Of a stretch of 64,000 bases of DNA, positions 7,168 through 63,705 are shown in pieces. The notes below the pieces were generated by a model, which saw only the letters and a program-made list of their open reading frames with translations, was not told where the DNA came from and did no database searches. The DNA is from Phaeosaccion multiseriatum (Eukaryota > Protista > Ochrophyta, other classes): NCBI GenBank assembly GCA_965112735.1, contig OZ218955.1:1736001-1800000 (forward strand), in the 5' to 3' direction. A program made the position numbers and the translations under genes. How positions within the stretch are numbered: position 1 is the stretch's first letter; each line of letters opens with the position of its first letter.

Positions 7168-18190
<11,023 letters not shown>

Positions 18191-29849: not shown

Positions 29850-30180
29850 CTTCAAAGTGAACATGGCCCGTGCCTCATCGCCCAACTACAATATTCATTA
29901 TTGCACAGTTTCTGTCCAGTAAAGATGGACATCCATGGCGTCGCCGAGAGACTCCATGTGAATTTTTGAGCTTCTCGCTGTGAAGCTTCGTAACCAGGTT
30001 CGTCCCTGCCATAAAAGCCAAAGGCCTTCTCGCTCTCCTTGCTCGCAGAAGGTCTGAAATTCAAATCAAGAAGGGCGCGTAGCTACACATGGCGTAATGT
30101 TTGCCTCGCAGGGGAGCCTGGGCATAGGTTTTGAAAGGGGGGTTGGGCTGACTGGGTGGGCATGCATGATCACAACAACG
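29850..30180 (-). pseudogene. Possible decayed Fanzor/TnpB (RuvC II - zinc finger - RuvC III) C-terminal remnant
   Basis: Across frameshifts the minus strand reads VVVIMHAHPVSPT / FKTYAQAPLRGKHYAMCSYAPFLI / EFQT / ...EKLKNSHGVSRRRHGCPSLLDRNCAIMNI / GDEARAMF. Order and spacing resemble Fanzor motifs (VVxxG...AP...DEFRTS...HGVxxC...RDxNAAxNI...GxERPxxF). Catalytic residues are degenerate and the match is by eye. Confidence 0.35.
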
Positions 30181-30604
30181 TGTGTCCGCAGCAGGCAGCA
30201 GGGGCAGCACTGCGGGGGACCTCTCTGAATCGGCAAGGCACACTGTGAGCCAATCCACCCCGGCTGACTGGGAGGAAGATGACGCTGTCTCTTGACATCG
30301 CATGATATATTTTCGCTGCTGTGTGTTGTACTGGGAGTTTTTTTAGTTCAAGAGACCGTCGACGTTTGCCGGTGGGAGATACTGGATAATTGACTTTTTA
30401 AAAAGGAGTTTGAACTGATAATCCAAAAACAAAATGCCCTTATGGCTGGGGAGTGGGGCGGGGCTCTTCTGCAGGAAGTCACAGACTTGCCATCCCCATG
30501 GCCAAAGCCCCCCTCCCCTCCTCTTCTCGGCCATGTTGGCCTCCTACCCCGATGGCCCTCTTCCTTCGACTGTCCTCAGGCCCAGCGGCGTCGCATCATC
30601 CCTC

Positions 30605-32122
30605 TTAGCCGCGATATAGCTCCACCCCTTCGGGTAGATCTGCAGGCAGTGGGTATTCCCTCCCAACTGTAAGCTTCCTCAGGCCAGCAGGTAGGCTCCC
30701 CACAGGGCGAGTGTAATGCGGTCCCAACTTCAGCGTCCGCAAAGAAGCAGGCAGGACCAGAGGGAAGTCAAAGTGACCCCCCATCTCCACCTCCTCTACA
30801 CCATCAGGAAGCACCAAGTGGTGATTGAACTTCGAGTTCCAAGCAAAATGAATTCTCTTCAGCGAGGCTGGCAGATCCAGAGGGAAGCTAAAGTGACCCC
30901 CCATCTCCACCTCCTCCACACCATCAGGAAGCACCACGCGTTGATTGAACTTGGAGTCACGAGCAAAATGAATCTTCTTCAGCGAGGCGGGCAGGTCCAG
31001 AGGGAAGTTAAAGTCATCCCCCATCACCACCTCCTCCATTCCGCACGGAAGGACCACGCGCTGATTGAACCTAGCACCAAATTTGATCTTCTTCACCGAG
31101 GCGGGCAGGTCCAGAGCGTGGTTAAAGCAATACCCCGTATCCACCTCCTCCGCACCACAAGGAAGAACCACCTGCTGTGTGAATCTCCCGCTAAACCTGA
31201 TCTTCTTCAGAGAGGCAGGCAGGTCCAGCGGGTGGTCGAAGTCAACCCCCATATACACCTCTTCAATTCCAGAAGGAAGGACCACGGGCTGATTGAAGTG
31301 AAGACCGAATTGGAGCTTCTTCAGGGAGGCAGGCAGGTCCAGAGGGAAGTTAAAGTCACCCCCCATTTGCACCTCCTCCACACCGCACGGAAGGACCACG
31401 TGCTGATTGAACACCCCGCTAAACTTGATCTTCTTCAGGGACGAAGGGAGGTCCAGAGCGCGGTTAAATTTCCACCCCATCTCCAACTCCTCCACACCAC
31501 AAGGAAGGACGATGTGCTTGTTGAACTTCTCGCCCATTTTGATCTTCTTCAGCGAGGCAGGAAGCAAGATCGTCGTATTAAAGGCTGCTCCGAGAATAAT
31601 TTCTTCCACAGTAGCAGGTATAGATACGTTTCGCTGATTGAAATAGTCGGGGAAGACCACACGCTTGACTGATGCTGGTAACACCGCCAGTACCCTTCGA
31701 ACAAGAGCCTCGTCTGCAGTTCTTATGCCCTCGTCCGTCCGATCTTCCCAATCAAGGCCAAGCTTAACAGCCGCCACGCGAAATGACCCTACCACATTCA
31801 CTTGCTGGTCCTGCCGCTCTTCCTCCTTCGCCTGAATCCGCCCCGACCTTCGAGCCCCCTTGACAGGCGTTTTGGCCGCAGCAGCAGCACCCGCTCCCTC
31901 GGATAAGGAAGACGCTGGAGGACGACACCTCTCCTCTTCTCCCTTCTGCTGCCTCAGTCTACTCAGCAAACAACGCCGAACATGCTCAGGCACGGTGCTG
32001 TTGATCACCAGAGTGCGGGAGGTGCCCTGATCGACCTCCTTGCACACTCCCCACAGAGCCTTGTCCGAAGTGAGGCTCGCCACAGTTCTCAAAGCCGCTC
32101 TCGCCGACTTGTGCTCAGGCAT
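30605..32122 (-). CDS. FNIP-repeat (LRR-like) protein, coding region intronless
   Basis: First ATG at 32122 (MPEHKSAR). About 170 aa unique N-terminus, then about 8 tandem 44-46 aa double units (VVLPxGVEEVxMGxxFNFPLDLPASLKKIxFxxxFNQx) matching the FNIP pattern FNQPI...LPxSLxxLxFG. Upstream GT-AG sites (32199-32137) suggest 5' UTR introns. Confidence 0.85.
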   Translation of the reverse strand: MPEHKSARAALRTVASLTSDKALWGVCKEVDQGTSRTLVINSTVPEHVRRCLLSRLRQQKGEEERCRPPASSLSEGAGAAAAAKTPVKGARRSGRIQAKEEERQDQQVNVVGSFRVAAVKLGLDWEDRTDEGIRTADEALVRRVLAVLPASVKRVVFPDYFNQRNVSIPATVEEIILGAAFNTTILLPASLKKIKMGEKFNKHIVLPCGVEELEMGWKFNRALDLPSSLKKIKFSGVFNQHVVLPCGVEEVQMGGDFNFPLDLPASLKKLQFGLHFNQPVVLPSGIEEVYMGVDFDHPLDLPASLKKIRFSGRFTQQVVLPCGAEEVDTGYCFNHALDLPASVKKIKFGARFNQRVVLPCGMEEVVMGDDFNFPLDLPASLKKIHFARDSKFNQRVVLPDGVEEVEMGGHFSFPLDLPASLKRIHFAWNSKFNHHLVLPDGVEEVEMGGHFDFPLVLPASLRTLKLGPHYTRPVGSLPAGLRKLTVGREYPLPADLPEGVELYRG

Positions 32123-32247
32123 TGCCGCACGCTTTTCTGAAGATTTTTGAAGGATACAGGTTGTTTGAGGTTCTGATGGCTTTATTGTGCCTCCCTTACC
32201 TATGGCTACTCTGAGCACACAAAAAAAAGGGAGGGGGAAAAAAATTC

Positions 32248-32272
32248 ACTTACGTGACGTACTTACGTAAGG
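32248..32272. promoter_or_regulatory. Double-ACGT element upstream of the FNIP gene
   Basis: ACTTACGTGACGTACTTACGTAAGG is near-identical to 773-797. It contains TGACGT and the palindrome CTTACGTAAG, and also reads as two GTAAGT donor sites on the minus strand. Confidence 0.4.
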
Positions 32273-32323
32273 CACTAAAAGTAATATCTTCCCCTGTTTC
32301 CTTCCTCTCCTGCACGCCTGCTC

Positions 32324-32725
32324 ATGGCCTCTGCTGCCGCTGCTGTTCCGGCTACAGCGTTGCCCCCATTGCAATGGCCGGACAAGATGATGGCTGCGAG
32401 TGGACGATGGGCCGAGAGCGTCATGAGCAAAGAGGGAGGCGAAGACAGTCGGTCGGCGCTGGAGGCGATGCAGGAGGAGGAGGGAACAGGCGTACAGGTG
32501 GACGAAGGAGAGGCCAAACAATCAGACGAAGGAGATAGAGGGCAGGAGGAGATCGACGACGTGGCACTAGTCTCGGGTGCCAAGTCTCGAGCGGGCAGAG
32601 CGCTGAAGCGCCCCAGCAGCGGAGGGAGGGGCGGGAAGAGTGTCTCATCAAACTTACTTCCGACTTCTAAAGGTGGCAATGTGTACGTAAGAGGCAGGGC
32701 CAAGTGCGGCGCCAGTAGTGGCTAA
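32324..32725 (+). CDS. Hypothetical small acidic/basic low-complexity protein, divergent from the FNIP gene
   Basis: 133-aa ATG-initiated ORF not built from microsatellite; no recognisable domain. Confidence 0.3.
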   Translation: MASAAAAVPATALPPLQWPDKMMAASGRWAESVMSKEGGEDSRSALEAMQEEEGTGVQVDEGEAKQSDEGDRGQEEIDDVALVSGAKSRAGRALKRPSSGGRGGKSVSSNLLPTSKGGNVYVRGRAKCGASSG

Positions 32726-33760
32726 AGAAGAAAAAGGGGGGGGAATTTCGGAGGTAGAATACTAGTCACAGATCGCGCATTTTGTAGTCCAACGCTGGCG
32801 CGCCCATCGTGCTTCACCAACGTCTGTCGCCCCCTTTACGGTGGAGGCGAGCCCCTTTCGCGCGCCACGGTCACGAAACATGACGAAGCCCCCGAAGAGG
32901 ACGAAGATGCGCACACCCCCTTCGCCCCAGCCCACCTCCCGTTCACGTGGCTGAATCTCCTCATCTCGGGCTGGGTCAGCTTGCGGCCCGTCAACAGGCG
33001 CTCGGTGTGGCCCCCCAGCCAGTGGGTAAGGGGCGACGAGTGGGGGAGGAACAACATGGGGGTGGCGTGTGCGCTGAGAGGAAGGGGTCGCGGGGGTGGG
33101 CACATGTTGTGGAGGTGTTGACAGCCTTGCCTTCCCCTGTGTGTCTAGTTCACTTACGTACGTTGTCTAGGAAAGACAATGGGGGGAGGCAGCGAGATAA
33201 GCGTGAATCAGAGACCCATGTATCGCACTGAGCCAGTGCAAGGCCATTCGACAGCGTCGCTCTCGCTCCCGTTGATTGCACCGCTCGACGACTCGCGACA
33301 CGACACACGGGCGTTTCTCAATACACAGGCTTGTCCAAGAGAGCCCTTCAAGTTTTCCTCTCCGATATACACTTAGGCTATATCAGTTTTACGAAGTATT
33401 TCTAACTAGTGTGTGTACGTGTGTGCGTACGCCTAGAGCGCCTCCTACCTAGCCTGCCTCCTTACAAGAGCAAAGCCCCTACAATTTTTTTCCTCTCCCC
33501 CCCCACTCACACCTTGTCGAGGCAGCAGCACTCCCTGGGCCACACACGACCCATGGCGCCTCTCTCCAGAGCGTCCTCCGGCCCTAGAGAAGCATCGCCT
33601 CTTTCGCACCGCTCGCACTGTTCACTCTCCCGCCGCCATGCAACGCTGCTCCACGTGATGTTCCATGGCACCTCGCTCTCGATGCGCGACGCCTTCCCGC
33701 CCATCTCGTCCGTGCGTCTCGGCCCGAATGATGGTCGTCCCTCGTCGCGTCTCAGCCCTT

Positions 33761-35766
33761 TCAGCTCATTTCCTCCGCCATGCTCTCCCACGCTTCGCAG
33801 CCCACACTCCAGGGCCTCTTCAGTGGCGGCATCCCCCTCTCCTTGCCGAAGGTCGGATCGGTCCTTCGCATCAGGTCCAGTGCGCTTTGAGATCTGAAGA
33901 AGGCTGCTGCTGCGTCTCTGAGCCGCTGCTCAATCTCAGGGCCCAGTCCCTTCCGCCGTGCCGCAGCCAAGGCCTTGTCAACCGAGGCGTCGGCCGAGAG
34001 GAGCTGCCGTGCAATGCCGCGATGATTCATGTAGATGGCGGCAAGCAGTGGGGTGACGCCGTTCGATCTCTGGGCATCGATCGGGGATCTGGCAGAGATG
34101 AGACGAGCGACGACAACCTCGTGACCATTTTGAGCAGCAAGGTGGAGGGGTGTTACACCATCGCTGGTCGCTTTGTCCACCCTCGCTCCTGCAGAGAGAA
34201 GCCGCTCCACCACGGCCTCGTGACCTCCATGAGCAGCAAGGTGGAGGGGTGTTGCACCGTCAGTTCTCCCTATCTCCACTTCTGCTCCTGCAGAGAGAAG
34301 CCGCTCCACCACGGCCTCGTGACCTTCTTGAGCAGCAAGGTGGAGGGGTGTTACACCATCGTTGTCCACTGTCTCCACCTTTGCTCCTGCAGAGAGAAGC
34401 CGCTCCACCACGGCCTCGCGACCTTCTTCAGCAGCAAGGTGGAGGGGCGTTCTACCATCGTTGTCCACTGTCTCCACCTTTGCTCCTGCAGAGAGAAGCC
34501 GCTCCACCACGGCCTCGTGACCTTCTTCAGCAGCAAGGTGGAGGGGTGTTGCACCATCGTTGCCCGCTGTCTCCACCTTTGCCCCCTCCGCTAGAAGCCG
34601 CTCCACCACGGCCTCGTGACCTCCATGAGCAGCAATGTGGAGGGGCGTTGCACCATGTTTGTTCGTTTTCTCCACCTTTGCTCCTGCAGAGAGAAGCCGC
34701 TCCACCACGGCCTCGTGACCTTCTTGAGCAGCGATCATGAGGGGAGTCCAGCTGTTGTTGGGCCTAGCCTCCACGTTCGCATTCTCATCGAGGAGCTGCT
34801 CCACCACGGACGCATGACCGTTCTTCGAGGCTGCCCAAAGCGGAGTCACGCCCTGGTCATCAGCCTTGTCGATGTTGGCATTGGCCCTGATGAGCCGCTG
34901 TACCACGCTCTCATGCCCTTTTTGGGACGCCACGAAGAGTGGAGTCCTTCCGATGTTGTCTACGTTGTTCACATCCGCGTCCGCTGCAATGAGCTGCTCC
35001 ACGACAGAAGTGTGCCCATTCTGAGAAGCCAGCCAGATCGCAGTCAATCCCTCATTATCAGCAGCATTGACACTGGCCCCCGCCGGAAGGAGCTGTTGCA
35101 CAGTTGTGAAGTGTCCTTTAGCGGCAGCCACAATCAAAGGCGTCACACCTTCGGAAGAAAATTGGTCTACACCGGCCCCGACATTCAACAACCGCCTCAC
35201 CACCTCGTTGTGGCCCGACCAGCTAGCCGCTATCAATGGCGTGTCCCCGGTCGGCCCTCCCCCGGTGCTGAAGGAGGCACCCTCCTGCAGCAGAAGGTCA
35301 ACGACATCCAGCCGATCGTATCTCGCAGCCCATATCATAGCCGTAACGCCATCTTCGTCGACAGGCTTCTCCAAGATGACTTTGCCGTGCTTGGCGACGA
35401 GCTTCCTAACCAGCGCTCTCACAGTGGAGAGGCTTTCCATTCCAACGACGGCCTGATAGAGTCGTTGCATCTTGGGGGGGGGGAGTCAAGCGGGGAGAGT
35501 TCGGGAGAGAAGGCAGTGAGGGAGACAAAGCAAAGGTGGGGAATGGATCGCGCTGAGTACACTGGACGTGTGGAGAAGCATTCCTTCAAGAGTCTGACAC
35601 ACACTCCTCTGATACATTGTCATCCGCTTACGCTGGGCTCGCTCCCCTTCGAGAGGGAGACTCATTTCCGCTCGCTACCCTCACATTATCAACCTTGCTC
35701 CTACGACGGGTCACCGAGCGAGCCCCTGCTGTGCCTTACCTCGGGTGCTCTGGCCCGCTGCGGCAT
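33761..35766 (-). CDS. Ankyrin repeat protein, copy A (14 repeats); 27-nt first exon plus one long exon
   Basis: Exon 1 35766-35740 (MPQRARAPE, ACC-ATG context, donor GAG|GTAAGG), intron 35739-35471, exon 2 35470-33761 (1710 nt) with GxTPLHLAAxxGHxxVVxxLL repeats. Confidence 0.92.
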
Positions 35767-36877
35767 GGTGAGGATGGCTTGGCCTGTCGATCCCCAGCCT
35801 CTCGCAGGAGAGGGCGAGAGCGGGGGGAAGAGAAAATCGGGGGAACCAAGCAGGCGATGCCCGTCCCCCTCAGACGTGTCGCACGAAGACTGTCGGGGAA
35901 GGAGGGCTCCCTCGCCGCGTTGTCCTCACAGCCTGTCACGGTCCTTTCTTCTTACTCTCTGTACAAGGAGAGGCCAACGCGGCGCTAAGCTAGGTGAGAG
36001 CGGAGGGGAACCAAGCCGACCCCTTCCTGACTTAAGACAAGCCCCTCCTCCCCAGGCGTGCCCCACTACAAGTGAAGAGTAAGGAGGGCTCTCTCAATAG
36101 CTTGCCACGCTCTGCCTATCAGGGTCCTTTCCCTTTGCTACATATTCCCGCATAGAAATGAAGAGGCGTCAGAGACACGGAGCCCAGAATATGTCAATGG
36201 CCCAGGCGTAGGCAGCCATTTTTTCAGCGGGGTTGTGGCTCCTTCCTCTAATTCACTTACATCTATCTGTCTGATGCCTTTCACAATGGGGGGTGGCCGC
36301 GAGACAGGCGTGACTCGGTGACCTATGGATCGCACTGAGCCAGTGCAAGGCCATTCCACAGCATCGCTCTCGCTCCCGTTGATTGCACCGCTCGACGACT
36401 CGCGACACGACACACGGGCGTTTCTCAATACACAGGCTTGTCCAAGAGAGCCCTTCAAGTTTTGCTCTCGGATATACACTTCTCTGCGACGTGTAGCGGC
36501 TATATCAGTTTTACGAAGTATTTCTAACTAGTGTGTGTGTACGTGTGTGCGTACGCCTAGAGCGCCTCCTACCTAGCCTGCCCCCCTCCTTAGAAGAGCA
36601 AAACCCCTGCGAAGTCTGCAGGTCCATGCACCAACCCCCCCACTCACACTTTGTCGAGGCAGCAGCACTCCCTGGGCCACACACGACCCATGGCGCCTCT
36701 CTCCAGAGCGTCCTTTAGCCCTAGAGAAGCACCGCCTGTTTCGCACCGCTCGCGCTGTTCACTCTCCCGCCGCCATGCACCGCTCCTCTATGTGATGTTC
36801 CATGATACCTCGCTCTCGATGCATGAAGCTTTCCCGCCCATCTCGTCCGTGCGTCTCGGCCCGAAGGATTGTCGGCC

Positions 36878-38425
36878 ATGTGTACAGACGAGCACGAGTG
36901 ACGCGTCATGTGTTGCCCAGTGCTTATGGGGGAGGAAGTTGGGTGAGTGATTGCAGCAAGCATTCCCTCCAACAGCCCGTCTTTCCCTCTAGGTAGCTAC
37001 CCCCCCTCTACCTTCTTCGTCTCCTCACGGGCGGCTATTACGTCTGGGCTTTGGGGGCGGGGAGGGAGAGTTCATTGAGGGAAGACGGCCTCGCGTCCTG
37101 ACGTGCTCAGTTGCTCAGTTGTCAGTGGTCAACAAGTTAGTCCTCAGTGGCCTCTTACTAAGTCTCAATGCCCTCTTACCACTGTGCCCTGCGCACTGTG
37201 CTTGTATGAGCGCAATCAGAATCCCCTCCCATCGAGACTGAACTGAGACTGAAACTGCTGGAACGGTAGGCCCCTCCAAGTCCTGACCCCTTTCCTCCCC
37301 CAAGAGTAAGGCCTTAAGGTTTGTAGCAGTAATGCAAACTAACGCGAGCACCAGCATCCATGCTACTTAGCTTCTTTAGTTGCACGCGAGAAAGCTGAGG
37401 ACGCAAGAGCTGCTGTTAAGTCAATGCTTGGCACTTGCTTGGCGTCGACACGCCCCAAGTCCTGACCTGACCCTTCCAGAGGCCTACAGAGGTGTACGTG
37501 AGGACTAACCAAAGGCCTACATAAGGGTCTGCAGACGCTTACGTAAGCCCCATAGAAGTCCTCTTGCCTCTCCCGTGGGTCGGTGACCGAGTTCGTTTGC
37601 CACTTTTTCAAGTGAAGATGGATAGGACGATCCACGACAGACATGCGCTGATGATTACGTTGTAGCGAAGTGGTAATCTAGCCGGTAGGAGGCCTTTGTG
37701 AAGACGGTAGGAACCAATGGAGGGTGCAGCGGTGGCTCACAAGACTCTGCTCGATGACGGGAGTGAGTGAGGTGAGTGTGAGTGAGTGAGTGAGTGAGTG
37801 AGTGAGTGAGTGAGTGAGTGAGTGAGTGAGCATGAGTGAGTGGCTTGCCTTTGCCTCCACACGAGCACAGCACCCCACTGCTGGCATCACCTTCGCGTAT
37901 GCGCTTGTGCCGGAGATCGGGGGAATTGTGCCCCCTCCAATCTACGACCACTTGGGCTGTGTGTTACTATGTGGTTTATCTGGGGCGCAGCCCCCCTCCA
38001 ATCTACGACCAATTGCTGTGCCCGCCTGCGGCGCCCGACCCAAGAGCCTTATGGGCATGGCATATCGTATCTCGATTTTGGAATGCCTCCGCCCACCCGA
38101 GCGAGCGGAACTGCCGATGTGCGTCGTACCCAAAGAAAGTCCTTCGCCTCACAAGCTCAAGCACTGTTTTGAACCTATTTGCTAGCTACCCCAGTGTGAA
38201 TCCCAGCCCCCCCCCCTCCCAACCCCATTCCTTTTGCTTCGCTCCCAAAGTCATTCCCGCCAAGTCGATCTGAATGTGCTCTAGACGGTGCCTCTCACAC
38301 ATCGCATCGTGGTATGCCCATACCCCCCATGGCCTGACTGGTGCAAACGAGCGAGAGCAATCCTCTTTAGTCTCAGTCGTTGTCCCCCCCCCATCTCGCA
38401 TTCGCCCAGGCCCCCTTCTCTTGAC
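36878..38425. other. About 1.55-kb insertion/replacement unique to unit B, abutting the ankyrin B stop codon
   Basis: Homology to units A and C stops at ~36877 and resumes at 38426. The segment contains (GAGT)n, short direct and inverted repeats and no convincing ORF. Confidence 0.8.
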
Positions 38426-38426
38426 T

Positions 38427-40113
38427 TCAGCTCATTTCCTCCGCCATACTCTCCCACGCCTCGCTCCCGACACTCCAGGGCCCCTCCAGCGGCGGCATCC
38501 CCCTCTCCTTGCCGAAGGTCGGATCGGTCCTTAGCATCAGGTCCAGTGCGCTTTGAGATCTGAAGAAGGCTGCTGCTGCGTCTCTGAGCCGCTGCTCAAT
38601 CTCGGGGCCCAGTCCATTCCGCCGTGCCGCAGCCAAGGCCTTGTCAACCGAGGCATCGACCGAGAGGAGCTGCCGTGCAATGATGTGATGATTGTTGTAG
38701 ATGGCGGCAAGCAGTGGGGTGACGCCGTTCGATCTCTGGGCATCGATCGGGGATCCGGCAGAGATGAGACGAGCGACGACAGCCTCGTGACCTTGTTGAG
38801 CAGCAAGGTGGAGGGGTGTTACACCATTGTTGATCGCTGTCTCCACCTTTGCTCCCGTAGAGAGAAGCCGCTCCACCACCGCCTTGCGACCTTCTTGGGC
38901 AGCAACGTGGAGGGGTGTTGCACCATCGTTGGCCGCTGTCTCCACCTTTGCTCCCTTTGAGAGAAGCCGCTCCACCACGGCATCGTGACCTCCAAAAGCA
39001 GCAAGGTAGAGGGGTGTTGCACCATGGTTGTCCGCTGTCTCCACCTTTGCTCCTGCAGAGAGAAGCCGCTCCACCACGGCCTCGTGACCTTCTTGAGCAG
39101 CGATCATGAGGGGAGTCCAGCTGTTGTTGGGCCTAGCCTCCACGTTCGCATTCTCATCGAGGAGCTGCTCCACCACGGACGCATGACCGTGCTTCGAGGC
39201 TGCCCAAAGCGGAGTCACGCCCTGGTCATCAGCCTTGTCGATGTTGGCATTGGCCCTGATGAGCCGCTGTACCACGCTCTCATGCCCTTTTTGGGACGCC
39301 ATTAGGAGTGGAGTCCTTCCGATGTTGTCTACTTTGTTCACATCCGCGTCCGCTGCAATGAGCTGCTCTACGACGGAGGTGTGCCCATTGTGAGATGCCA
39401 TCCAGATCGAAGTAACTCCCTCATTATCAGCAGCATTGACACCGGCCCCCGCCGGAAGGAGCTGCTGCACAGTTGTGAAGTGCCCTTCAGCGGCAGCCAC
39501 AATCAAAGGCGTCATCCCGTTGAGAGCGGCTTGGTCTACATCGGTCCCGACATTCAACAGCCGCCTCACCACTTCGTTGTGCCCCCGCCGGCTAGCCGCT
39601 ACCAATGGCGTGGTCCCGTGCGACCCTCCCCCGGTGCTGAAGGAGGCACCCTCCTGCAGCAGAAGGTCAACGACATCCAGCCGACCGCAAACCGCAGCAC
39701 ATATCATAGCCGTAAGGCCTTCTTCATCGACAGGCTTCTCCAAGATCGCTTTGCCGTGCTTGGCGGTGAGCTTCCTAACCAGCGCTCTCACAGTGGAGAG
39801 GTTTTCCATTCCAACGATGGCCCGATGGAGTCGTTGCGTCTTGTCCATGCGAGCAGCGTTAGGGAGAGAAGACAAGTGAGGGCGACAAGCGAAGGTGGAG
39901 AATGGCGAATCGGACTCAGTACACTGGACTGGAGGAGCATTCCGCAAACACTCCTCCCACACGTTGTCATCCGCTTACGCTGGGCGCGCTCCCCTTCGAA
40001 AGGGAGACTCATTTCCGCTCGCTACCCTCACATTATCAGCCTTGCTCCTACGACGGGTCACCGAGCGAGCCCCTGCTGTGCCTTACCTCGGGTGCTCTGG
40101 CCCGCTGCGGCAT
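38427..40113 (-). CDS. Ankyrin repeat protein, copy B (11 repeats)
   Basis: Exon 1 40113-40087 (MPQRARAPE); intron with CTAAC branch-like motif and ACAAG acceptor; exon 2 39839-38427 (1413 nt, copy A minus 3 x 99 nt). Confidence 0.92.
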
Positions 40114-41244
40114 GGTGAGGATGGCTTGGCCTGTCGCTCCCCAGCCTCTCGCAGGAGAGGGTGAGAGCGGGGGGAAGAGAAAATCGGGGGAACCAAGCAG
40201 GCGATGCCCGTCCCCCTCAGACGTGTCGCACGAAGAGTGTCGGGGAAGGAGGGCTCCCTCGCCGCGTTGTCCTCACAGCCTGTCACGGTCCTTTCTTCTT
40301 ACTCTCTGTACAAGGAGAGGCCAACGCGGCGCTAAGCTAGGTGAGAGCGGAGGGGAACCAAGCCGACCCCTTCCTGACTTAAGACAAGCCCCTCCTCCCC
40401 AGGCGTGCCCCACTACAAGTGAAGAGTAAGGAGGGCTCTCTCAATAGCTTGCCACGCTCTGCCTATCAGGGTCCTTTCCCTTTGCTACATATTCCCGCAT
40501 AGAAATGAAGAGGCGTCAGAGACACGGAGCCCAGAATATGTCAATGGCCCAGGCGTAGGCAGCCATTTTTTCAGCGGGGTTGTGGCTCCTTCCTCTAATT
40601 CACTTACATCTATCTGTCTGATGCCTTTCACAATGGGGGGAGGCAGCGAGATAAGCGTGAATCAGAGACCCATGTATCGCACTGAGCCAGTGCAAGGCCA
40701 TTCGACAGCGTCGCTCTCGCTCCCGTTGATTGCACCTCTCGCTTGACGACTCGCGACACGACACACGGGCGTTTCTCAATACACAGGCTTGTCCAAGAGA
40801 GCCCTTCAAGTTTTCCTTTCGGATATATACTTCTCTGCGACGTGTAGGGGCTATATCATTTTAATTTCTAACTAGTGTGTGTGCGTGTGTGTGTACGTGT
40901 GCGTACGCCTAGAGCGCCTCCTACCTAGCCTGCCCCCCTCCTTAGAGGAGCAAAACCCCTACGAAGTCTGCAGATCCATGCACCAACCCCCCCACTCACA
41001 CCTTGTCGAGGCAGCAGCACTCCCTGGGCCACACACATGGCGCCTCTCTCCAGAGCGTCCTCAGGCCCTAGAAAAGCACCACCTCTTTCGCACCGCTCGC
41101 GCTGTTCACTCTCCCGCCGCCATGCACCGCTGCTCTATGTGATGTTGCATGGTACCTCGATCTCAATGCGTAAAGCTTTCCCGCCCATCTCGCCCGTGCG
41201 TCTCGGCCCGAATGATGGTCGTCCCTCGTCACGTCTCAGCCCTT

Positions 41245-43144
41245 TCAGCTCATCTCCTCCGCCATGCTCTCCCACGCCTCGCAGCCCACACTCCAAGGCC
41301 TCTTCAGTGGCGGCATCCCCCTCTCCTTGCCGAAGGTCGGATCGGTCCTTCGCATCAGGTCTAGTGCGCTTTGAGATCTGAAGAAGGCTGCTGCTGCCTC
41401 TCTGAGCCGCTGCTCAATCTCACGGCCCAGTCCATTCCGCCGTGCCGCAGCCAAGGCCTTGTCAACCGAGGCATCGGCCGAGAGGAGCTGCCGCATAATG
41501 CCGTGATGATCGTTGTAGATGGCGAGAAGCAGTGGGGTGAAGCCGTTCGACCTCCGTGCATCGATCGGGGATCTGGCAGAGATGAGACGAGCGACGACAA
41601 CCTCGTGACCATTTTGAGCAGCAAGGTGGAGGGGTGTTACACCATCGTCGTACACTGTCTCCACGATTGCTCCTGCAGAGAGAAACCGCTCCACCACGGC
41701 CTCGTGACCTTTTCCAGCAGCAAGGTGGAGGGGTGTTACACCATCGTTGTCCGCTGTCTCCACCTTTGCTCCTGCAGAGAGAAGCCGCTCCACCACTGCC
41801 TCCTGACCTTCTTGAGCAGCAATGTGGAGGGGTGTTACACCATCGTTGGCCGCTGTCTCCACCTTTGCTCCTGCAGAGAGAAGCCGCTCCACGACGGCCT
41901 CGTGACCTTCTTGAGCAGCAAAGTGGAGGGGCTTTGCACCATCTTTCTCCGCTGTCTCCACCTTTGCTCCTGCAGAGAGAAGGCGCTTAACCACGGCGTC
42001 GTGACCTTCTTGAGCGGCAAAGTGTAGAGGAGTGGCGCCCTCGGGGTGAGACGCGAGTACGTCCGCCCCTGCAGCCAAAAGGAACTTCACCACGGCCAAA
42101 TACCCTCTGAGAGCAGCGATCATGAGAGGAGTAAAGCCCCCATCGCTCCTGGCATGCACGTTGGCATGCTCATCGAGGAGCTGCTGCACGATGGACGCAT
42201 GCCCGCCCTCCGAGGCTACCCACAGTGAAGTGAAGCCACTCTCATCAGCCCTTTCGATGTTGGCGTTGGCCCCGATCAGCCGCTGTACCACGCTCCCATG
42301 GCCGCTTTGGGACGCCATTAGGAGTGGAGTCCTTCCCATGTTGTCTACTTTGTTCACATCCGCGCCCGCTGCAATGAGCTGCTCTACGACGGAGGTGTGC
42401 CCATTGTGAGATGCCATCCAGATCGAAGTACATTCCTCATTATCAGCAGTATTGACACGGGCCCCCGCCGCAAGGAGCTGCTGCACAATAATGAAGTGCC
42501 CTTCAACGGCAGCCACAATCAAAGGCGTCATCCCGTCGAGAGCGGCTTGGTCTACATCGGCCCCAACGTCCAACAGCCGCCTCACCACCTCGTTGTATCC
42601 CGACCCGCTAGCCTCTATCAATGGCGTGGTCCCGTGCGACCCTCCCCCGGTGCTGAGAGAAGCCCCCTCCTGCAGCAGAAGGTCAACGACATCCAGTCGA
42701 TCGTATCTCACGGCCCATATCGTAGCCGTAGAGACGTCTTCGTCGACAGGCTTCTCCAAGATCGCTTTGCCGTGCTTGGCGACGAGCTTCCTAACCAGCG
42801 CTCTCACAGTGGAGAGGCTTTCCATTCCAGTGATGGCCTGATAGAGTCGTTGCATCTTGCTTGTCCATGCGAGCAGCGTTTGGGAGAAAAGACAATGAGG
42901 GCGGTAAGCAAATGGTGGGTAATGGATCGCGCTCAGTACACTGGACTGGAGGAGCATTCCTTCAAGAGCCTAGTGCAAACACTCCTCCCACACGTTGCCA
43001 TCCGCTTACGCTGGGCGCCCTCCCCTTCGAAAGGGAGATTCATTTCCGCTCGCTACCCTCACATTATCCACCTTGCTCCTACGACAATTCACCGAGCGAG
43101 CCCCTGCTGTGCCTTACCTCGGGTGCTTTGGCCTCCTGCGACAT
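41245..43144 (-). CDS. Ankyrin repeat protein, copy C (13 repeats)
   Basis: Exon 1 43144-43118 (MSQEAKAPE); exon 2 42855-41245 (1611 nt, copy A minus 99 nt). Confidence 0.92.
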
Positions 43145-43433
43145 GGTGAGGATGGCTTGGCCTGTCGCTCCCCAGCCTCTCGCTGGAGAGGGCGAGAGCG
43201 GGGGGAAGAGAAAATCGGGGGAACCAAGCAGGCGATGCCCGTCCCCCTCAGGCGTGTCGCACGAAGAGTGTCGGGGAAGGAGGGCTCCCTCGCCGCCTTG
43301 TCACGGTAAAAACATAAATACAATGGCCCTCCCCTCCCTCCTGCGTGTCCTTGACGGTTGGTCCTCTGCTCACAGATGGAAAGCAATTTTTTATTTTTTT
43401 CTCCCATTGTTTTCCTCCCTTTCCTCCTCTTCA

Positions 43434-44391
43434 ATGGGAAAGGTAAGGTGCCTCCCTTGTCTTCTTCCTCTTCTCCTCCTTTCTCTTCTTGTTACCTCTC
43501 TCTGTCTCACTCTGTCGCTCCTCCCGCTCTTCTGGTTGCTTTTCTTGTTCTCCCTCCCCCCCCCCTCTCTCTCTCTCTCTCTCGATCAGTCTCTAGCTCT
43601 CTCTCAATCTCTCTCTCCCGCCCCCCCCTTTCTCTCTCTTTCACTCTCTCGCGCTCTCTCCCACCCGCTCTGCCGATCAAGTTCCGGCTCTATTGTGGAC
43701 TCACTCAGCTGCATACCCAGCAATCCCCAACCTAACAGACGCGCTGCTGCTGTTGTTTGTTGCTGCCCTCCCCCCTCCCCATCCATCAAGGACGAGGGGC
43801 ACAAGCGTCTAAAGAAAGAGAAAAAAGAGGAGAAGAAGAAGAAAAAGAAGGAGAAGAAGGCCAAGAAGAAGTCAAAGAGTTTGGACAAGCATCATGAAAA
43901 GACCACCAGCAGCACGGGGAACAAAGCGCCAGATAGCACCGATAGCGATGTCAGCGACAGCGACAACAGCAGCACGAACAACAGAGGCCAGGATCAGGCC
44001 AATGCCTCGGCCTCGCAGGGAAAGAGCCCCAGCGGCCCGGTGGATCCTCAGCTTCAAATGCACCTCGCCAACCGACAGTTGGCGCTCAAGCAGCAGCAGG
44101 AGAAGCAGCAACAGTTGATGATACGTCAGCAGCAGACGGGCAAGGAGCTGAGCGCAGCGGCGGCAGAGAAGCTCCTCAACGAGAGAAGCGCCCAGCAGAG
44201 CAAAAAGAGAGGCGCGAGGGCAGGCAGCATCACACCCACAAAGCTCTCGGCGGTGGATCTCGCAGAGCGGCAGAGGAGGAACGCCGCTCGCTTTGCTAAC
44301 GTGGCACCGACACCGAGCGGTACGGGTGGAGGAGTGGTAGCAGCAGTTGGTGGTACAGCAGCAGGCGCGGCGAAAGGAAGAAAGAGAAAGC

Positions 44392-44427
<36 letters not shown>

Positions 44428-46680
44428 GTGCCTCGTGGTCCGAGGGGGGAGCAGTCGGGGACGACGACTGGAGCAGCAACAACGAAGGGGCCGCAGCCGT
44501 CAAGGGCACAAGCAAGGTGAGGGGTGTCAGGACGGACGGAACGTGCCCAGGAACAGCACCGCTGGGTTTCGGTTGGCCTCTGCCCTCTCTTTGTGTGGCG
44601 ACTGTAGGAGGGAGGGAGGGAGGGACGGAGGGAGGGAGGGAGCGCGTGTTGTGCCGCAAGGCCTCTTTTGATGTCGCTGCTCTTTGGTCAGTTGCGCGTA
44701 TGGATGGGATGACCCCGGCGATGAGAGCACCGTCTGTCTGCTACTTTGCTTGGAAACGGTCAGGAACGAGGCCCGAGAAGCCTTGGCAATTGCTCCATTT
44801 CTTTCCCCCCCTGCATTGCCTTGCTGACTGTGCTGGTTGGCTGCCCTCTCCTCGTTCCCTCCTTCCCTCCTTCTCTCTACTCCCCCGCCATCTGTGTTCC
44901 TCGTGCGCCGGTGCGGCTCCACTGTTGCTCCACTGTTGCTCCGCTGTTGCTCTTCTGTTGCGCTGCTGCCGCAGGCCCTGGAAAAGTCTTATTTCCGCCT
45001 CACAGAAGCCCCAGATCCTTCCGTCGTCCGGCCTCTAAAGTACTTGAAGAAGGTAAGGCAATGAACGCAAGACAACGGCCAGTAGTGGAGGGAAAGGCGC
45101 AGGGGCAGGGGGGATTGAGGTATGCAGGGTCACAAGGTGAGGTGTCCAAGCTCATTGTACAGGGTCACAGGATATGCGTACTGGGCCAGGCGAATGCGCA
45201 ACGTGGAGGGAGAATTGCGCAGGGGGCTCACAGGCCCTACTCTCTCTCTCTCAACGTCCGTCTGTCTCTCCCTCAATGTCCGTCTGTCTCTCCCTCACAC
45301 ACACACATATGTGCACACACGCGCGCGCGCGAATATGAACTGCCTCGTCCCTGACCATTGGGGAAAAAAGTGTTTTTCCCTCATGCTGACGGACACAGAG
45401 TCACTCCTGACAACTCACCCCCTGTCCTGACACCCTCTGCTGCTCCCTTCCTCCCGTGCCCGCCCTGCCCCACCCCATCCCAGTCTTTGGAGCATGTCAA
45501 GCGGCGCTATGCCGCGGACGAGGAGTACGCGTGGGCGTGCGAGCAGCTCAAGGCCATTCGGCAGGACGTTACTGTGCAGCACATACAAGACGAGCTTACG
45601 GTAGACGCCTACCAGACGCACGCCAGAATCGCGCTGGAGAGCGGGGATCTGAACGAGTACAATCAGGTACAGTAGGTCGGAGGGAGGGGGGGGGGGAGGT
45701 TCGGGAGGGGGGGGGGAGAGAGGGAGGGACGGACGGAGGGAGGGAGGGAGGGAGGGAGGGAGGGAGGGAGGGAGAGAGGGAGAGAGGCACTCGCCTTCTC
45801 TAGCATGGAGTGTAGGAGGTGTCGAGGAGGTGGTGTCCTGTATGGGTTCTCGGCTTTGCTTTTGTTGTTTGTCCATTGTGGGGTGTGTTTCGCTGAGACT
45901 GACACGAAAAATACTAAAGGGTAGGGTATAGCCCGCTGACCACACACAAGACCAACCCCGAAGCCCAAAGCTGATGACCCCTCCTCTGCTTGGAACATCT
46001 GCCCCGCTGCTGTCTGTATGTGTATCACCAACTCCTACTGCGGCTGCTGCTTGGCGGTGCCCTTTCAGTGTCAGAGCCGCTTGAGCGACTTGGCAGCAGT
46101 GGAGGGGCTCACCGTTGCGCAGGATGAGTTCACCGCCTATCGCCTTCTGTACTCGCTCTACCGGTAAGTCAGTGAGTCAGTGAGCGAGTGAGCGCCAGGC
46201 TTGCTTCCTTATGCACTTTCTCTTTCCATCGCCTGTTTCCTTGGTTTGTTCTACTTGGATGGCCGGCCTGCTCCTCCCCCTGCCCCTTCCCCTGCCCCTG
46301 CCTCTTCTCCTGTCGCTGTCCTGCCCGCGTGCGTGCGTTGCCACCCTGACCCCTGTTTCTGTGTTCCCCTCCCCCAGGGGGGCCAAGGAGGACGTGTACA
46401 AGTGGTTGAGCACTTTGTCCGAGCGGCAGCGGCGCCAGCCAGCGGTTCGACACGCGATGGGTGTGATTCGGAGTGAAGGTGAGGCCGGCATGGGACTACA
46501 TCGACTGCCTTGCCCGCCCCCTCCTCCTCCTTTCGTTCCAGGCGCTTCCCTCGTCCTGCTGCTCTGTGCACCCCTCACCTCGCCACACGACGAGCCCCGT
46601 TCCCCGTCCCCCGTTGCTGTACGATAGAGGTATATCGATGATCAATCGTCATGCTCAACGCCTCTTCTCTTCCCCTCCTA

Positions 46681-46728
<48 letters not shown>

Positions 46729-47115
46729 CCACCCGCTTCCGGCTCTGCCCCAGCCTCAAGCGATTACCACACCTTCTTCCGCCTCTACGACTCCGCGCCT
46801 CACATGAGCGCCTTCCTCATGGACTACTTGGTGGACAGGATGAGGCGGGCGGCCTTTGAGCGGATGGTGAGGGCATACATGCCCAGCCTGCCCCTGTCCT
46901 TCATCGCAACGACCCTGTCCTTTTCCAGCGCGGACGAAGCCGCGAACTTCATTGTCAAGCATGGGGGAGTGCTGCGGAGGAGAGGGGAGGGGGAGGGGGA
47001 GGGCGAAACGTTTCTCGACGTGAAAGAGTCGAGAGCTGTTGACGCCCTTGCTGCGAGTACGGCTGTTGCGGCGTCTCGGACCGGCGGCATGAGGAGGGTC
47101 GTCGCTCGGAGATGA
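43434..47115 (+). CDS. LENG8: SAC3/GANP/THP3 family protein (LENG8/Thp3-like); multi-exon
   Basis: Spliced exons give RRNAARF...VKGTSK|ALEKSYFRLTEAPDPSVVRPLKYLKK|SLEHVK...CEQLKAIRQDVTVQHI...YQTHARIALESGDLNEYNQ|CQSRL...EFTAYRLLY...DYHTFFRLYDSAPHMSAFLMD, all hallmark LENG8/Thp3 motifs. Probable 9-nt first exon ATGGGAAAG|GT at 43434-43442. Confidence 0.9.
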
Positions 47116-49056: not shown

Positions 49057-51373
49057 GGAGAGAGAGAGAGAGAGAGAGAGAGACGGAAAGGAGACGCAAG
49101 GAGAGGGTTTGAAAATGTAAATACAAAAACAAAGTCCCTTCGTTCGTCATTCACTCCGAGACAGAGGGAACGGAGAACATAACGAGAGGGTGAAGTAGGA
49201 AAGTACAGGGGAGGTTGACACAAGCAAGAGGTAACAGGACCCGTTCCTTTCCGTCACTCCCCCCGAGACAAGAGGGGAGGTGCGACGCAAGCGAGAAGAG
49301 TTGAGAGGATCAAGATGGAACAACAGAATGCCATTCCTTGGTCATTCACTCCCAGAGACAGGGAAAAGGGAGAAGATAACGAAAGGTCAGTCAAGTCATC
49401 AGGGGGGGCTTGAGAAGAAAGATGACGGCAAACATACACACAACTCATTCCTTCGTCGTTCGTCACTCACTCAGTCCCGCACACATCCCAACACACACAA
49501 AAAGACCCATCAACCAACCAACCAACCAACCAACCTGTGAAAAGCCCGTGAGTTGGCTCCACACCGCATTGACGTGTGAGATGCAAAAGGGCGGCTCCGC
49601 GCTGAGTATGACTCGCGCCTCTGCACTTGGCTGCAGCGCCATGTCCACCGTGTTTGGCGGCACAGGCAGAGAGTTGAGAGCCCCGTTGGCGCGCTGCAGC
49701 TGCTGCATCCAGCCCATAAAGTCGAAGACAATCTCCGCGGCCAGAAGGCGGCTGTTGAAGCTGAACTTGCATTGCATCATGCCCGTCATGTGCAGTTCGC
49801 AGTTTGCGCCGCTGTTGACGGCTCCCTCCGTCTGCAGCGTGAATCTGTGTGTTGTGTGTTTGAGGGGGGGTGAGGAATTATCAATTGGTTTGCGTCATCA
49901 TCATCATCATCGAGAGAGAGAGCGAGAGAGAGAGAGACAGGGAGAGAGCAGACATGTTTTAGGGAAAGGGAGATGTAATTCAGAGACAGGGAGGGAGACA
50001 CGCCGCCCACCCGAGGGTAAGGCCACACCGGCAGCAAATTGAAGTGAGCCCACGTACGCCACTCCCCACCCTTCCCTTCCCCACGCCCCACAAACGATGA
50101 GAGCTTGCCTGCACATGAGCATATCCCGCGCGATGAGAACGTCCTCGCTGCGCAGGTTCCAAGTCATGCGGGTGGTGCGGCCCTCCTTCTGGGCCCGCCG
50201 CCACTGCAGCGAGCCCGCCCCGAGAGACCCCACCAGCACCGCCTGGGACACTGCGTCAGTCAGCACGGCGTCCACCCCGAACAGAACACGCGAGCTGTTG
50301 ACAATCTCGGCGCGGCTGAAGCTGCGGTACGGGGTAATGGGCTGTGGTGGGATGGGCGAGGGTCGCGAGGGGGGTGGGTGGGTGGGTAGAACGGTAGAAT
50401 GCGATGGTGAGTGTTGTGTTTGGTTGGGTAAGCGCCTTTTCGTTACTTTTTTGTTGATGCCTCCACGTGCATGCCAACCCCCCCCCCCCAATGCCCCCCG
50501 TCTTCTTACCAATGTCAGGCCAAAGGTCTCCTCGAGAATGCTGGCCATCTCCGCGCGGTCGGCCCTCTCCGAGCCAAAGTAGAGGCGGAAAAAATGCTCG
50601 ATCACAAACTTGCGCTGCCGTTCAATCTCGGCCACCTGTGTAAGGTGCCGGGCCCACGCCTCCTGCTCTTGCTCCTTGGACGCACTGAGGTCCTGCACGA
50701 GCTGCTTCATTTTGTTTACATAGGCCTTCTTCCGTAACCGGGTATTGCGAGCGTGCTCTCGATTGCGATCGCGGCTGTTGGAGGAGAAGCGGGACGGGCG
50801 GGGAAAGGAAAGCGTATTAGTATTGTGTCGGTCAGCACACAGCTTCAAGTATAGAGAAGAAAGAAAAGAAGGGGAAGCGACCCCTCGTTCAGAGCAGAGG
50901 CCGACTCGGGTGGGGGGGGGGGCAGCAGCAGTCGCAACACTGTGGAAGCAAGAATCGAGCCTCCCGAGACAGAACGGGCCGCAACCGCCGCAGCAACGTA
51001 GAGGAAGGAAGGCACAGAGTAGGGACTGACTCAGTTGCCTTTCTCCGCGCTTCACCGCCCTCAGAGCCCCGCCCTTCACGGTTGCCCCTTCATGGCCCCG
51101 GACCCTCCACCCCTTCGTTCCCTCCCCTTTGTCGACTTACTTCTGTTGCGCCTTCTCCACCGGATCCAGACATTTCCGCCTGGATCGCACCCCCGCACTG
51201 GTGCTGCTGCTGCTGCTGGTTTGACGGCACGATCTCGCGCCCCCGTCCTCAAATTCCTCTTCGTCCGGTTGCTGCTTCAGCTTTTGGACGTTGTAGCTGC
51301 TGCTCACCTCCAGCTCGGGCTGCGGAAGCGCCTGCTGCAGCTGCTGGCCATGCCCGTGGCCTTCGTCCTCCAT
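47561..51373 (-). CDS. bZIP-PAS transcription factor (stramenopile type, not aureochrome); 6 exons
   Basis: Exons 51373-51141, 50774-50510, 50341-50109, 49844-49535, 48981-48803 and 48455-47561 join in phase. They encode the bZIP basic region NRDRNREHARNTRLRKKAY, the PITPYRSF motif and a PAS domain (EARVILSAEPPFCISHVNAVWSQLTGFSQAEAEAKTLALLEGARTD...SYKKGEGLPFANFIQIYPL). There is no LOV GRNCRFLQ motif. Confidence 0.88.
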
Positions 51374-62770: not shown

Positions 62771-62815
<45 letters not shown>

Positions 62816-63705
62816 CACAGCAGCAACAGCACAGGAGGCACCACAAGAGGCCGGAGGGTGGGGGGTTACAGAAGTTAGCTCAGCTGCTTTAAATTGGACA
62901 ATAATGTGGAGTGCGGCAGTGCAGGAGAAGCAACACCCCGGTGCGATTAACTCACTCAGCATGGTTCCAGCAGGGACGGGCCTTTTCTCAGTGAGGCGAA
63001 GCGCCCACCCTCTGCCGTTGTCGGTTCGAAACACCTCGGTGGCAGGGAATGATCGTCGCTGTAGAGCCGTGTTGGCGCAGTAGCGCTTCTCGTTGGTGGT
63101 GCTGCTGTTGTTGGCTTTGGTCGCCTTGGGCCCTCTATTGTTGGGGCCGTCAGGGCCGATGGAGGGGCAGCGATCAGGCACACACTCCATGAATAGCTGC
63201 AACACGCACACACACACGCACACACACACAAGGAAGAACGGGCAACGGCAATAGCAACATCATTGCACAGGGTCAAGGCAGTAGCAGCAGCAGGAGCGAG
63301 CAGCAGAAGCAGCAGCAGCAGCAAGTTGGGCGATGATCAGTGCATATCGGGTGTAGCAAGGGAAGTGAGTAAAAGGGAAGGCGGGATGGGAGCGGAGCTC
63401 TCTCTCCCTCCCTCTCTCTCTCACACACACGCTCTCTCTCTCTTCCTCCCTCTCCCTCCCTCTCTCCTCTCTCACACACACCCTCTCTCTCTCTTCCTCC
63501 CTCTCCCTCCCTCTCTCCTCTCTCACACGCACGCTCTCTCTCCCTCTCCCTCCCTCTCTCCTCTCTCACTTGTCGGTTGATACAATCGGAGCTACATCCC
63601 GTGGCCGGGGTGCAGGAGCACTGGGGGGCATCGTCCTCCGGTATAGAAGCCTTGCTGATGGCCGCGTTGTTCTTGGGGTACAGATTGGACTTGAGCTTCC
63701 TGTAC
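52348..63705 (-). CDS. AWS-SET-postSET histone methyltransferase (NSD/ASH1/SETD2 class) followed by a PLU-1-like helical region and PHD fingers; 5' end likely outside the window
   Basis: AWS region [12 protein letters not shown]...[20 protein letters not shown]...[12 protein letters not shown] region GRGWAL...EYLGEVID...[12 protein letters not shown]...ELEYNY. Post-[16 protein letters not shown]. PHDs HCLCR...[15 protein letters not shown]...FICPMC and FCVCR...[16 protein letters not shown]...YICIAC. Q-rich last exon ends at 52348. Confidence 0.85.
56119..56304. repeat. (CACT)n array, read on the coding strand as tandem GTGAGT donor-like motifs at an intron start
   Basis: The minus strand reads CCG|GTGAGTGAGTGAGT... 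for ~185 bp. Confidence 0.9.

Follow-up and report, generated by a model that had tools for sequence, protein, structure and literature searches.

Positive selection on the binding face of three tandem ankyrin-repeat genes in the alga Phaeosaccion multiseriatum

Three tandem ankyrin-repeat paralogs (A, B and C) are encoded in the window (the whole 64-kb stretch of Phaeosaccion multiseriatum DNA that was analysed), and our results support positive selection on the binding face of the encoded proteins, with their reading frames under purifying selection. Such selection indicates that the partners change, but these need not be pathogens. We lean towards the explanation that this is a small, recent tandem family of functional stand-alone ankyrin solenoids, encoded in the nuclear genome of a stramenopile, which would offer variable binding surfaces in evolutionary conflict; the targets are most likely changing proteins of an intracellular virus, parasite or endosymbiont, recognised or blocked by the paralogs, for which we infer an immune role. 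The features are listed below (duplicated units from self-BLAST and alignments; first coding exons and intron predicted by sequence consensus).

30605-32122, minus strand: FNIP/LRR-type gene, uninterrupted, ~18 units of 19-21 aa of alternating types
33176-36283, minus strand: duplicated unit bearing A, ~3.1 kb with flanks
33761-35470, minus strand: main exon of A, 1710 nt, 14 ankyrin repeats, 39-aa N-cap, 67-aa tail
34117-34732, minus strand: homogenised block of A, 6.2 units of 99 nt
35471-35739, minus strand: predicted intron of A
35740-35766, minus strand: predicted first coding exon of A, 27 nt (9 aa), Kozak-like start, GT donor
36283-40630, minus strand: duplicated unit bearing B
38427-39839, minus strand: main exon of B, 1413 nt, 11 ankyrin repeats
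38782-39101, minus strand: homogenised block of B, 3.2 units of 99 nt
40087-40113, minus strand: predicted first coding exon of B
40630-43302, minus strand: duplicated unit bearing C
41245-42855, minus strand: main exon of C, 1611 nt, 13 ankyrin repeats
41601-42024, minus strand: homogenised block of C, 4.3 units of 99 nt
43118-43144, minus strand: predicted first coding exon of C

As the sequence-only reading had stated, the main exons differ by multiples of 99 nt (length gaps of 297, 99 and 198 nt among A, B and C), the paralogs keep the same caps and C-terminal tail (the 39-aa N-cap and the 67-aa tail are common to all three), and the ankyrin repeats of each gene lie inside a single exon, in one open frame. 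The repeats are Pfam Ank repeats, of which the first is 34 aa long and the last is degenerate; a Pfam scan of the paralogs matched ankyrin families alone. Each copy has a predicted spliceosomal intron; in the acceptor region of C two AG dinucleotides lie 4 nt apart, and only the second preserves the frame. The duplicated unit includes ~520 nt upstream of exon 1, which leaves no room for a NACHT/NB-ARC or effector domain, and upstream of its start the C unit has only ~160 nt in common with A and B. The B unit carries 1.55 kb of unique sequence (36877-38426) immediately 3' of the stop codon; it has neither terminal repeats nor a stop-free frame of >145 codons and so cannot be called a transposon. 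The count of three paralogs refers to the 64-kb window.

The near-invariant frame that had been attributed to the internal repeats in general is restricted to the homogenised block (3-6 repeats per gene), and does not extend to repeats 1-6 and the last repeat, which differ from one another at ~40-60 of 99 nt and are orthologous by position in A, B and C. The A block is out of phase with the repeats, starting at about ankyrin position 11 of repeat 7 and ending at about position 17 of repeat 13; in C, repeats 6 and 7 and the first half of repeat 8 are outside the block. Every variable motif listed earlier was found in the paralogs, one of them ('LR') in C7 and hence outside the homogenised block. 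The block repeats of A and C share on average 87% pairwise nucleotide identity, and no two of the 99-nt units are identical (minimum of 4 differences within the block). By hand count, the block repeats of A and C are ~84-85% identical in amino acids to the majority sequence, and the B block is ~100 aa long; these values are borderline for the high internal conservation of fungal NLRs, defined as 85% identity over at least 100 aa.

Repeats A7 and B7 are hybrids: their TPLMIAA codons differ from those of C7 at one of 21 nt, and the remainder is block sequence. Two block units from different genes are no less similar than two from one gene (12.7 vs 12.8 differences), and 54 of the 135 informative site pairs in the block are incompatible, part of which homoplasy may explain. 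Similarity between A and B is mosaic, with 3 differences in 518 nt upstream vs ~9% in the 3' flank (p=7e-12), and with synonymous differences in 0 of 84 vs 10 of 113 codons of adjacent tracts (p=0.006). The hybrid repeats, together with the mosaic similarity, are signs of recombination in register and of gene conversion, both within and between paralogs. Of the recombination among 99-bp units that had been proposed as unequal crossover, the products are present, whereas the exact pathway is something that we can only infer. The block tree is almost star-like, with changes that are mainly singletons; this also fits a single expansion followed by diversification through point mutation and occasional conversion, and the equal distances within and between genes also fit an expansion older than the gene duplication.

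In the explanation that we favour, diversity has three sources. One is whole-gene tandem duplication of a ~3.1-kb unit, seen directly in the window. Another is recombination in register, in the central 99-nt block as well as between paralogs, which may have taken the form of unequal crossover, slippage or conversion and produced the observed changes in repeat number and the hybrid repeats. The third is selection, which would have fixed point substitutions on the beta-turn and inner-helix face, as the statistics given below indicate. All three would be germline-scale; programmed somatic repeat shuffling is extremely improbable, and nothing at the locus supports it.

In DARPins, six positions per repeat are randomised, all on the concave binding surface. 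Amino-acid differences among the paralogs occur in 28 of 42 codons at these positions vs 44 of 202 codons elsewhere in the repeats (Fisher p=4e-8), and sets of six randomly chosen positions equal this concentration in 1e-4 of draws. The variation expected at DARPin positions is therefore present above chance, but two other surface positions, 1 and 10, are as variable: position 1, a fixed Asp in DARPins, is the most variable block site (eight residues across 11 units), and position 10 varies in six of the seven orthologous repeats. Because of these two positions, the match of variable sites to the DARPin design is good but not exact. The paralogs resemble DARPins in having caps, a framework close to the consensus and variable residues at the surface positions that are randomised in the designed proteins; unlike DARPins they are natural, have 11-14 repeats and vary at positions 1 and 10. 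The variation is DARPin-like, and 'DARPin library', the name once given to the locus, is too strong for three genes.

A comparison of dN/dS at binding and framework codons had been set beforehand as a test that could refute the reading; it gave ~2.5-3.6 at the binding codons vs 0.3-0.5 in the structural core, and the reading was not refuted. Codon maximum likelihood, applied to codons that are orthologous by position, gives an omega of 3.4-3.6 at DARPin positions, or 2.7-3.0 if multi-nucleotide changes are allowed (p from 2e-8 to 2e-3, with or without such changes). In the orthologous repeats the structural core has an omega of 0.44 (p=0.003; 0.3-0.5 over all analyses), and positions that are neither core nor DARPin positions are near neutral (0.87-0.94), so that constraint is modest; the caps have an omega of 0.35 (p=4e-4; range 0.35-0.47). 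Among the 13 block units, binding positions again show an omega of 2.65-2.9 (p 0.002-0.006) and the core one of 0.29 (p=0.006), although recombination can raise omega on the block tree artificially. The 1068 aligned coding nt contain no indel, whereas intron and flank, over 875 nt, contain about a dozen.

The AlphaFold2 model of A (mean pLDDT 88) is an ankyrin solenoid, with 6MOL, an extended DARPin, as its best PDB match. The N-cap is predicted to form two helices and has no Pfam match; the tail, a predicted helix followed by disorder, has no meaningful match in Pfam or PDB (cut-off E=10). The tail contains no SOCS box or F-box-like domain, and an E3 adaptor of the ASB/SOCS-box or poxviral PRANC/F-box type was rejected. 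Since no enzyme, NOD, F-box or SOCS-like domain was found, the paralogs would act by binding alone, or via a partner docked on the conserved caps or tail. The lack of an effector domain also counts against our preferred explanation, which leaves the outcome of binding unexplained.

Relatives were searched for with the main exons (the 9-aa first exon is too short as a query). The exact paralog proteins were not found in a collection of 15 billion proteins, and no tail homologs were found among proteins, metagenome contigs or viral contigs. Full-length matches are generic ankyrins with at most 43% identity, and generic ankyrins also swamped a representative-library search; matches to latrotoxins, TRPA1 and ankyrin-B reflect mere generic ankyrin similarity. 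Searches of proteins and metagenome contigs and with full-length queries gave no second assembly or close relative of the locus.

The neighbouring FNIP/LRR-type gene varies in a similar way: its variable residues are on the beta-strand and the next turn, and dN exceeds dS at strand positions, sites that were picked after inspection of the data. No Rfam families were detected between 29 and 44 kb. A neighbouring bZIP gene has diatom relatives (42-51% identity) and points to a stramenopile.

A rather unlikely alternative is that the paralogs are duplicated adaptors diverging towards different endogenous partners, or serve in mating or in telling self from non-self, in either case without a pathogen and with repeat-number change as a by-product of the homogeneous block. 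Positive selection after duplication requires no pathogen, allorecognition is part of the fungal precedent (PMC2873952), and algal ankyrin expansions have been ascribed to scale attachment (PMC3491373) or cold adaptation (PMC11409870). However, replacements are in excess in most repeats, in all three copies and again among the block units, a spread that favours repeated change over one shift, and the adjacent FNIP/LRR gene, an unrelated repeat gene, has a similar pattern.

Relaxed or near-neutral evolution of young redundant copies, in which surface residues simply tolerate change and conversion tracts from unseen paralogs at a greater distance mimic dN > dS, is improbable and largely refuted. 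Omega of the whole genes is 0.7-0.9, differences in A are densely clustered at residues 73-76 and 104-109, and C may have a frame-breaking acceptor, all as relaxation might produce. But relaxation cannot push omega significantly above 1, and the excess persists not only under the multi-hit model but also after removal of the clustered tracts and repeat 6 (omega 2.5, p=0.003). Core and caps are significantly below 1, and in the orthologous repeats only one of 42 binding codons has a synonymous variant vs 28 with replacements.

That the locus is an island of repeat genes derived from a giant-virus-like source or otherwise acquired horizontally, and that it still evolves as a selfish element or a recent capture, is very improbable. 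Giant viruses typically encode both ankyrin and FNIP repeats (PMC5871332; PMC4421812), and the region from 29.9 to 43.3 kb combines long exons free of interruption with a microsatellite content of 0.4% vs 5-8% on the flanking sides; its GC content, however, equals that of the flanks, no viral hallmark gene was seen in it, neither the tail nor the FNIP protein has a relative among the viral contigs searched, structural matches to viral proteins are generic and do not exceed 30% identity, and every ankyrin copy has its predicted intron. An assembly or haplotype artefact, with alleles or mis-joined reads posing as copies, finds a hint in the 99.4% identity of A and B across the 518 nt upstream and is hardly credible given three copies that diverge by 5-14% in coding and non-coding sequence with distinct indels, the unique stretch in B, 99-nt units that are all distinct and frames that are all open.

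We return to the reading of the paralogs as variable binding surfaces in conflict, which has counterparts in several known systems. Fungal NLR ankyrin arrays have already been reported to be polymorphic in repeat number and positively selected at the concave face (PMC4986451). Podospora Pa_3_8560 and Pa_2_8180 and the hnwd WD40 family (PMC4986451; PMC2873952) resemble the locus in several ways: their repeats are homogenised and differ in number, hybrid units occur, repeats are exchanged inside one gene as well as from gene to gene, and positive selection acts on the face formed by the inner helix and the beta-hairpin. Unlike these, the locus belongs to a stramenopile, homogenisation is limited to the central 3-6 repeats, and the ordinary repeats flanking the block are also positively selected; it has no NACHT/NB-ARC (Pfam) and no N-terminal effector domain (the N-cap is 39 aa), which rules out membership among fungal-type NLRs.

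An analogy had been drawn with brown algae, whose ROCO-LRR and NB-ARC-TPR genes (PMC3341825; PMC11378527) likewise form paralog families in stramenopiles, with a concave face under diversifying selection and a proposed immune role. The likeness in selection stands, but the analogy is weaker than that with fungal NLR ankyrins: the brown-algal genes have one repeat per exon, shuffled exons and an attached GTPase or NB-ARC, whereas here ankyrin repeats lie in one exon without a signalling domain (no Roc-COR/NB-ARC by Pfam), and exon shuffling of that type is ruled out by the single open frame. Wolbachia ankyrin genes (PMC3563639) and the accordions of Bodo saltans virus (PMC5871332) are stand-alone and change repeat number by recombination in a host-parasite setting, but on the symbiont or virus side, not as nuclear genes of a eukaryote.

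Ankyrin-only genes with orphan termini in tandem, as here, are found in Mamiellophyceae, a different algal lineage with 149 stand-alone copies in Bathycoccus, many in tandem (PMC3491373), and in the metagenomic loci L003, L021 and L044, where dN also exceeds dS at DARPin positions. Structural or cold-adaptation roles are proposed for the Mamiellophyceae expansions, and binding-face selection is not reported, in the excerpts of PMC3491373 and PMC11409870. None of 80 metagenomic ankyrin loci matched the caps or tail. Of 20 unrelated ankyrin arrays from metagenomes, used as a control, 16 have the same selection signature; this suggests that it also occurs in the stand-alone ankyrin genes of further microalgae, for whose expansions other explanations have been given. 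It is conceivable, if doubtful, that several microalgal lineages use effector-less stand-alone ankyrin and FNIP/LRR binders in intron-poor islands, diversified by repeat recombination and positive selection, to neutralise or sense giant viruses or endosymbionts inside the cell. If true, this would be a layer of innate defence separate from NLRs and from brown-algal exon shuffling, with the locus as one window onto it. For the recognition of intracellular viruses and parasites in unicellular algae, the three genes, with selection measured at known binding positions, are directly testable candidates. The mechanism of diversification is already known from the ankyrin repeats of Podospora NLRs, of which the locus is a good further example and not a surprise; new here are the stramenopile host, proteins that stand alone, with orphan caps and neither a NOD nor an effector domain, and the adjacent, similarly varying FNIP/LRR gene.

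Three tandem minus-strand ankyrin paralogs (A, B and C) lie in eukaryotic nuclear sequence (~59% GC, introns rich in microsatellites). In a self-comparison each sits in a unit of ~3.1 kb, flanks included. Their main exons are:

33761-35470, minus strand: paralog A, 14 ankyrin repeats
38427-39839, minus strand: paralog B, 11 ankyrin repeats
41245-42855, minus strand: paralog C, 13 ankyrin repeats

All three share a 39-aa N-cap and a 67-aa tail, for which no match was found in Pfam, PDB, the protein collection, metagenome contigs or viral contigs. Sequence consensus alone predicts for each a first exon of 27 nt, whose start context and donor site are good; searches used the main exons only. At the predicted acceptor of C (42856-42870, minus strand) two AG lie 4 nt apart, the first of which would leave exon 1 out of frame. 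The main exon opens with ATG in A and C but with ACG in B, where an ATG lies in frame three codons before it. Right after the B stop codon, 1.55 kb of unique sequence (36877-38426) displaces B's 3' flank; it contains one GAGT microsatellite, and neither terminal repeats nor a long frame.

Repeats 1-6 and the final one belong to a diverged, ordinary type (~40-60 differences per 99 nt among themselves) and are positional orthologs across the paralogs. A central block of homogenised 99-nt units accounts for all length differences. It does not keep phase with the protein repeat, running from about position 11 of repeat 7 to about position 17 of the penultimate repeat. The repeat-number variation claimed by the sequence-only reading holds (14/11/13 repeats), but the homogenised frame covers just the central 6.2 (A), 3.2 (B) and 4.3 (C) units. 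The AlphaFold2 model is a solenoid predicted with confidence (pLDDT 88): two helices form the N-cap, and a long helix at the C-terminus is followed by disorder. The best PDB match to the model is an extended DARPin (designed ankyrin repeat protein).

Repeat 7 of A and of B starts like repeat 7 of C (of the 21 nt that code for TPLMIAA, one differs) and then turns into block sequence, a hybrid form such as in-register exchange would produce. Within genes and between genes, block units are equally distant (12.8 and 12.7 differences), and 40% of informative pairs in the block cannot fit one tree. Over 518 nt upstream A and B share 99.4% identity, but their 3' flanks differ by 9% and their introns by 14%; from one coding tract to the adjacent one, synonymous differences between them fall from 10/113 to 0/84. 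Because of these shifts in A/B similarity, the hybrid repeats and the tree-incompatible pairs, gene conversion among the paralogs is well supported. The unit tree is nearly star-like, which allows a single expansion followed mostly by point mutation as an alternative to continuous shuffling. Exchange among 99-bp units, as first proposed, is borne out by hybrid repeats and conversion, but not unequal crossover specifically, whose products would look the same as those of slippage or deletion.

Selection was tested at six positions set in advance (2, 3, 5, 13, 14 and 33), which we take to be the DARPin-randomised sites, numbered after Binz et al. 2003. DARPin randomised positions number six (PMC6796971). 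Two non-overlapping data sets were used. For positionally orthologous codons, omega at these positions is 3.4-3.6, or 2.7-3.0 with multi-nucleotide changes allowed (p 2e-8 to 2e-3), and 2.5 (p=0.003) with two dense clusters and repeat 6 taken out; it is 0.44 in the structural core, 0.87 at other surface positions and 0.35 in the caps. For block units (n=13), omega at binding sites is 2.65-2.9 (p 0.002-0.006), an estimate that recombination may inflate; core codons give 0.29, and the remaining surface sites, positions 1 and 10 among them, give 2.1. The reading frames are maintained: the 1068 aligned coding nt hold no indel, against some dozen in the intron and flank. The early observation that variation concentrates at DARPin positions is confirmed without a model: amino acids differ among paralogs at 28/42 binding codons vs 44/202 others, an excess equalled by random position sets in 1e-4 of draws.

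This locus thus shows duplication, hybrid repeats, conversion and selection. On balance we favour, with some reserve, the reading that these are stand-alone variable binders, a young family engaged in a biotic conflict; the proteins' ligand, defence role and mode of action are parts of this reading that we infer. Divergence of the paralogs toward endogenous or self-recognition partners is a less probable account of the same changes. Relaxed evolution is improbable.

The surrounding genes are as follows:

30605-32122, minus strand: uninterrupted FNIP/LRR-type gene, directly downstream of the ankyrin genes
3219-3875: heat-shock-factor-like gene (motifs, by eye)
14775-17087: kinase-like gene (motifs, by eye)
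43700-47100: SAC3/GANP-like gene (motifs, by eye)
49910-51136: bZIP gene (motifs by eye, confirmed by search)
61787-63259: SET-domain gene (motifs, by eye)

The last five, which flank the locus, are ordinary nuclear genes by motif, and the bZIP gene has named relatives among diatoms (42-51% identity), on which ground we take the host to be a stramenopile. The stretch 29900-43300 is an island of long exons with repeat-protein genes only; microsatellite DNA makes up 0.4% of 29.9-43.3 kb vs 5-8% on either side. The FNIP/LRR-type gene has an orphan 147-aa N-terminus and alternating 19-aa units (two are of 21 aa), whose variable residues fall on the predicted strand and turn; at these sites, picked after inspection, dN vs dS is 1.36 vs 0.56 and 0.67 vs 0.26 for the two unit types. 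A viral island is quite unlikely, as no viral relationship was found in viral contigs, checked for the ankyrin tail and the FNIP/LRR protein, or in structure matches. Least likely of all is that the copies are an artefact; we regard the feature as real.

A metagenome scan with the block retrieved unrelated ankyrin genes (≤56% identity), none with a cap or tail match to A, B or C. Twenty arrays have units that resemble one another; in 16 of them, dN at DARPin positions exceeds 1.5x dS. The estimates are plain pairwise ones from small numbers of units that are not independent, on arrays picked by query similarity, and carry no significance level. These arrays include fungal NLR-like genes (one, L009, bears NPHP3_N) and stand-alone, partly clustered ankyrin genes (L001, L003, L021 and L044) on contigs that look like green picoalgae, presumably their source. 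Stand-alone genes with homogenised units are found at:

L003, 5191-7659
L021, 2432-9487: three copies
L044, 4978-11032: two copies

Several loci of this type have dN above dS at DARPin positions. Two other homogenised arrays were seen: one (L031, 4837-5826; dN/dS ratio ~2.2) beside an acyl-CoA-synthetase-like gene on a contig that looks prokaryotic, and a long one (L055, 94-3801; ratio ~2.1) in a 1235-aa protein whose N-terminal half is EF-hand-like plus unknown.

Our literature search, of incomplete coverage, found no description of stand-alone ankyrin paralogs under positive selection from a stramenopile. Stand-alone ankyrin genes vary in Wolbachia (PMC3563639) and giant viruses (PMC5871332), and Bathycoccus carries 149 ankyrin genes of orphan type, many of them arranged in tandem and none with an assigned function (PMC3491373). 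Brown-algal receptors shuffle exons of one repeat each (PMC3341825), whereas all repeats of A, B and C lie in a single main exon, and we reject that system as the identity of the locus. The same regime is on record for ankyrin repeats of Podospora NLRs: isolates have from 7 to >16 of them, and the sites under selection lie on the inner helix and the hairpin (PMC4986451). Repeats of hnwd genes rearrange spontaneously (PMC2873952). A, B and C are not NLRs, because NOD and effector domains are absent, but their ankyrin array evolves like the recognition domain of fungal NLRs.
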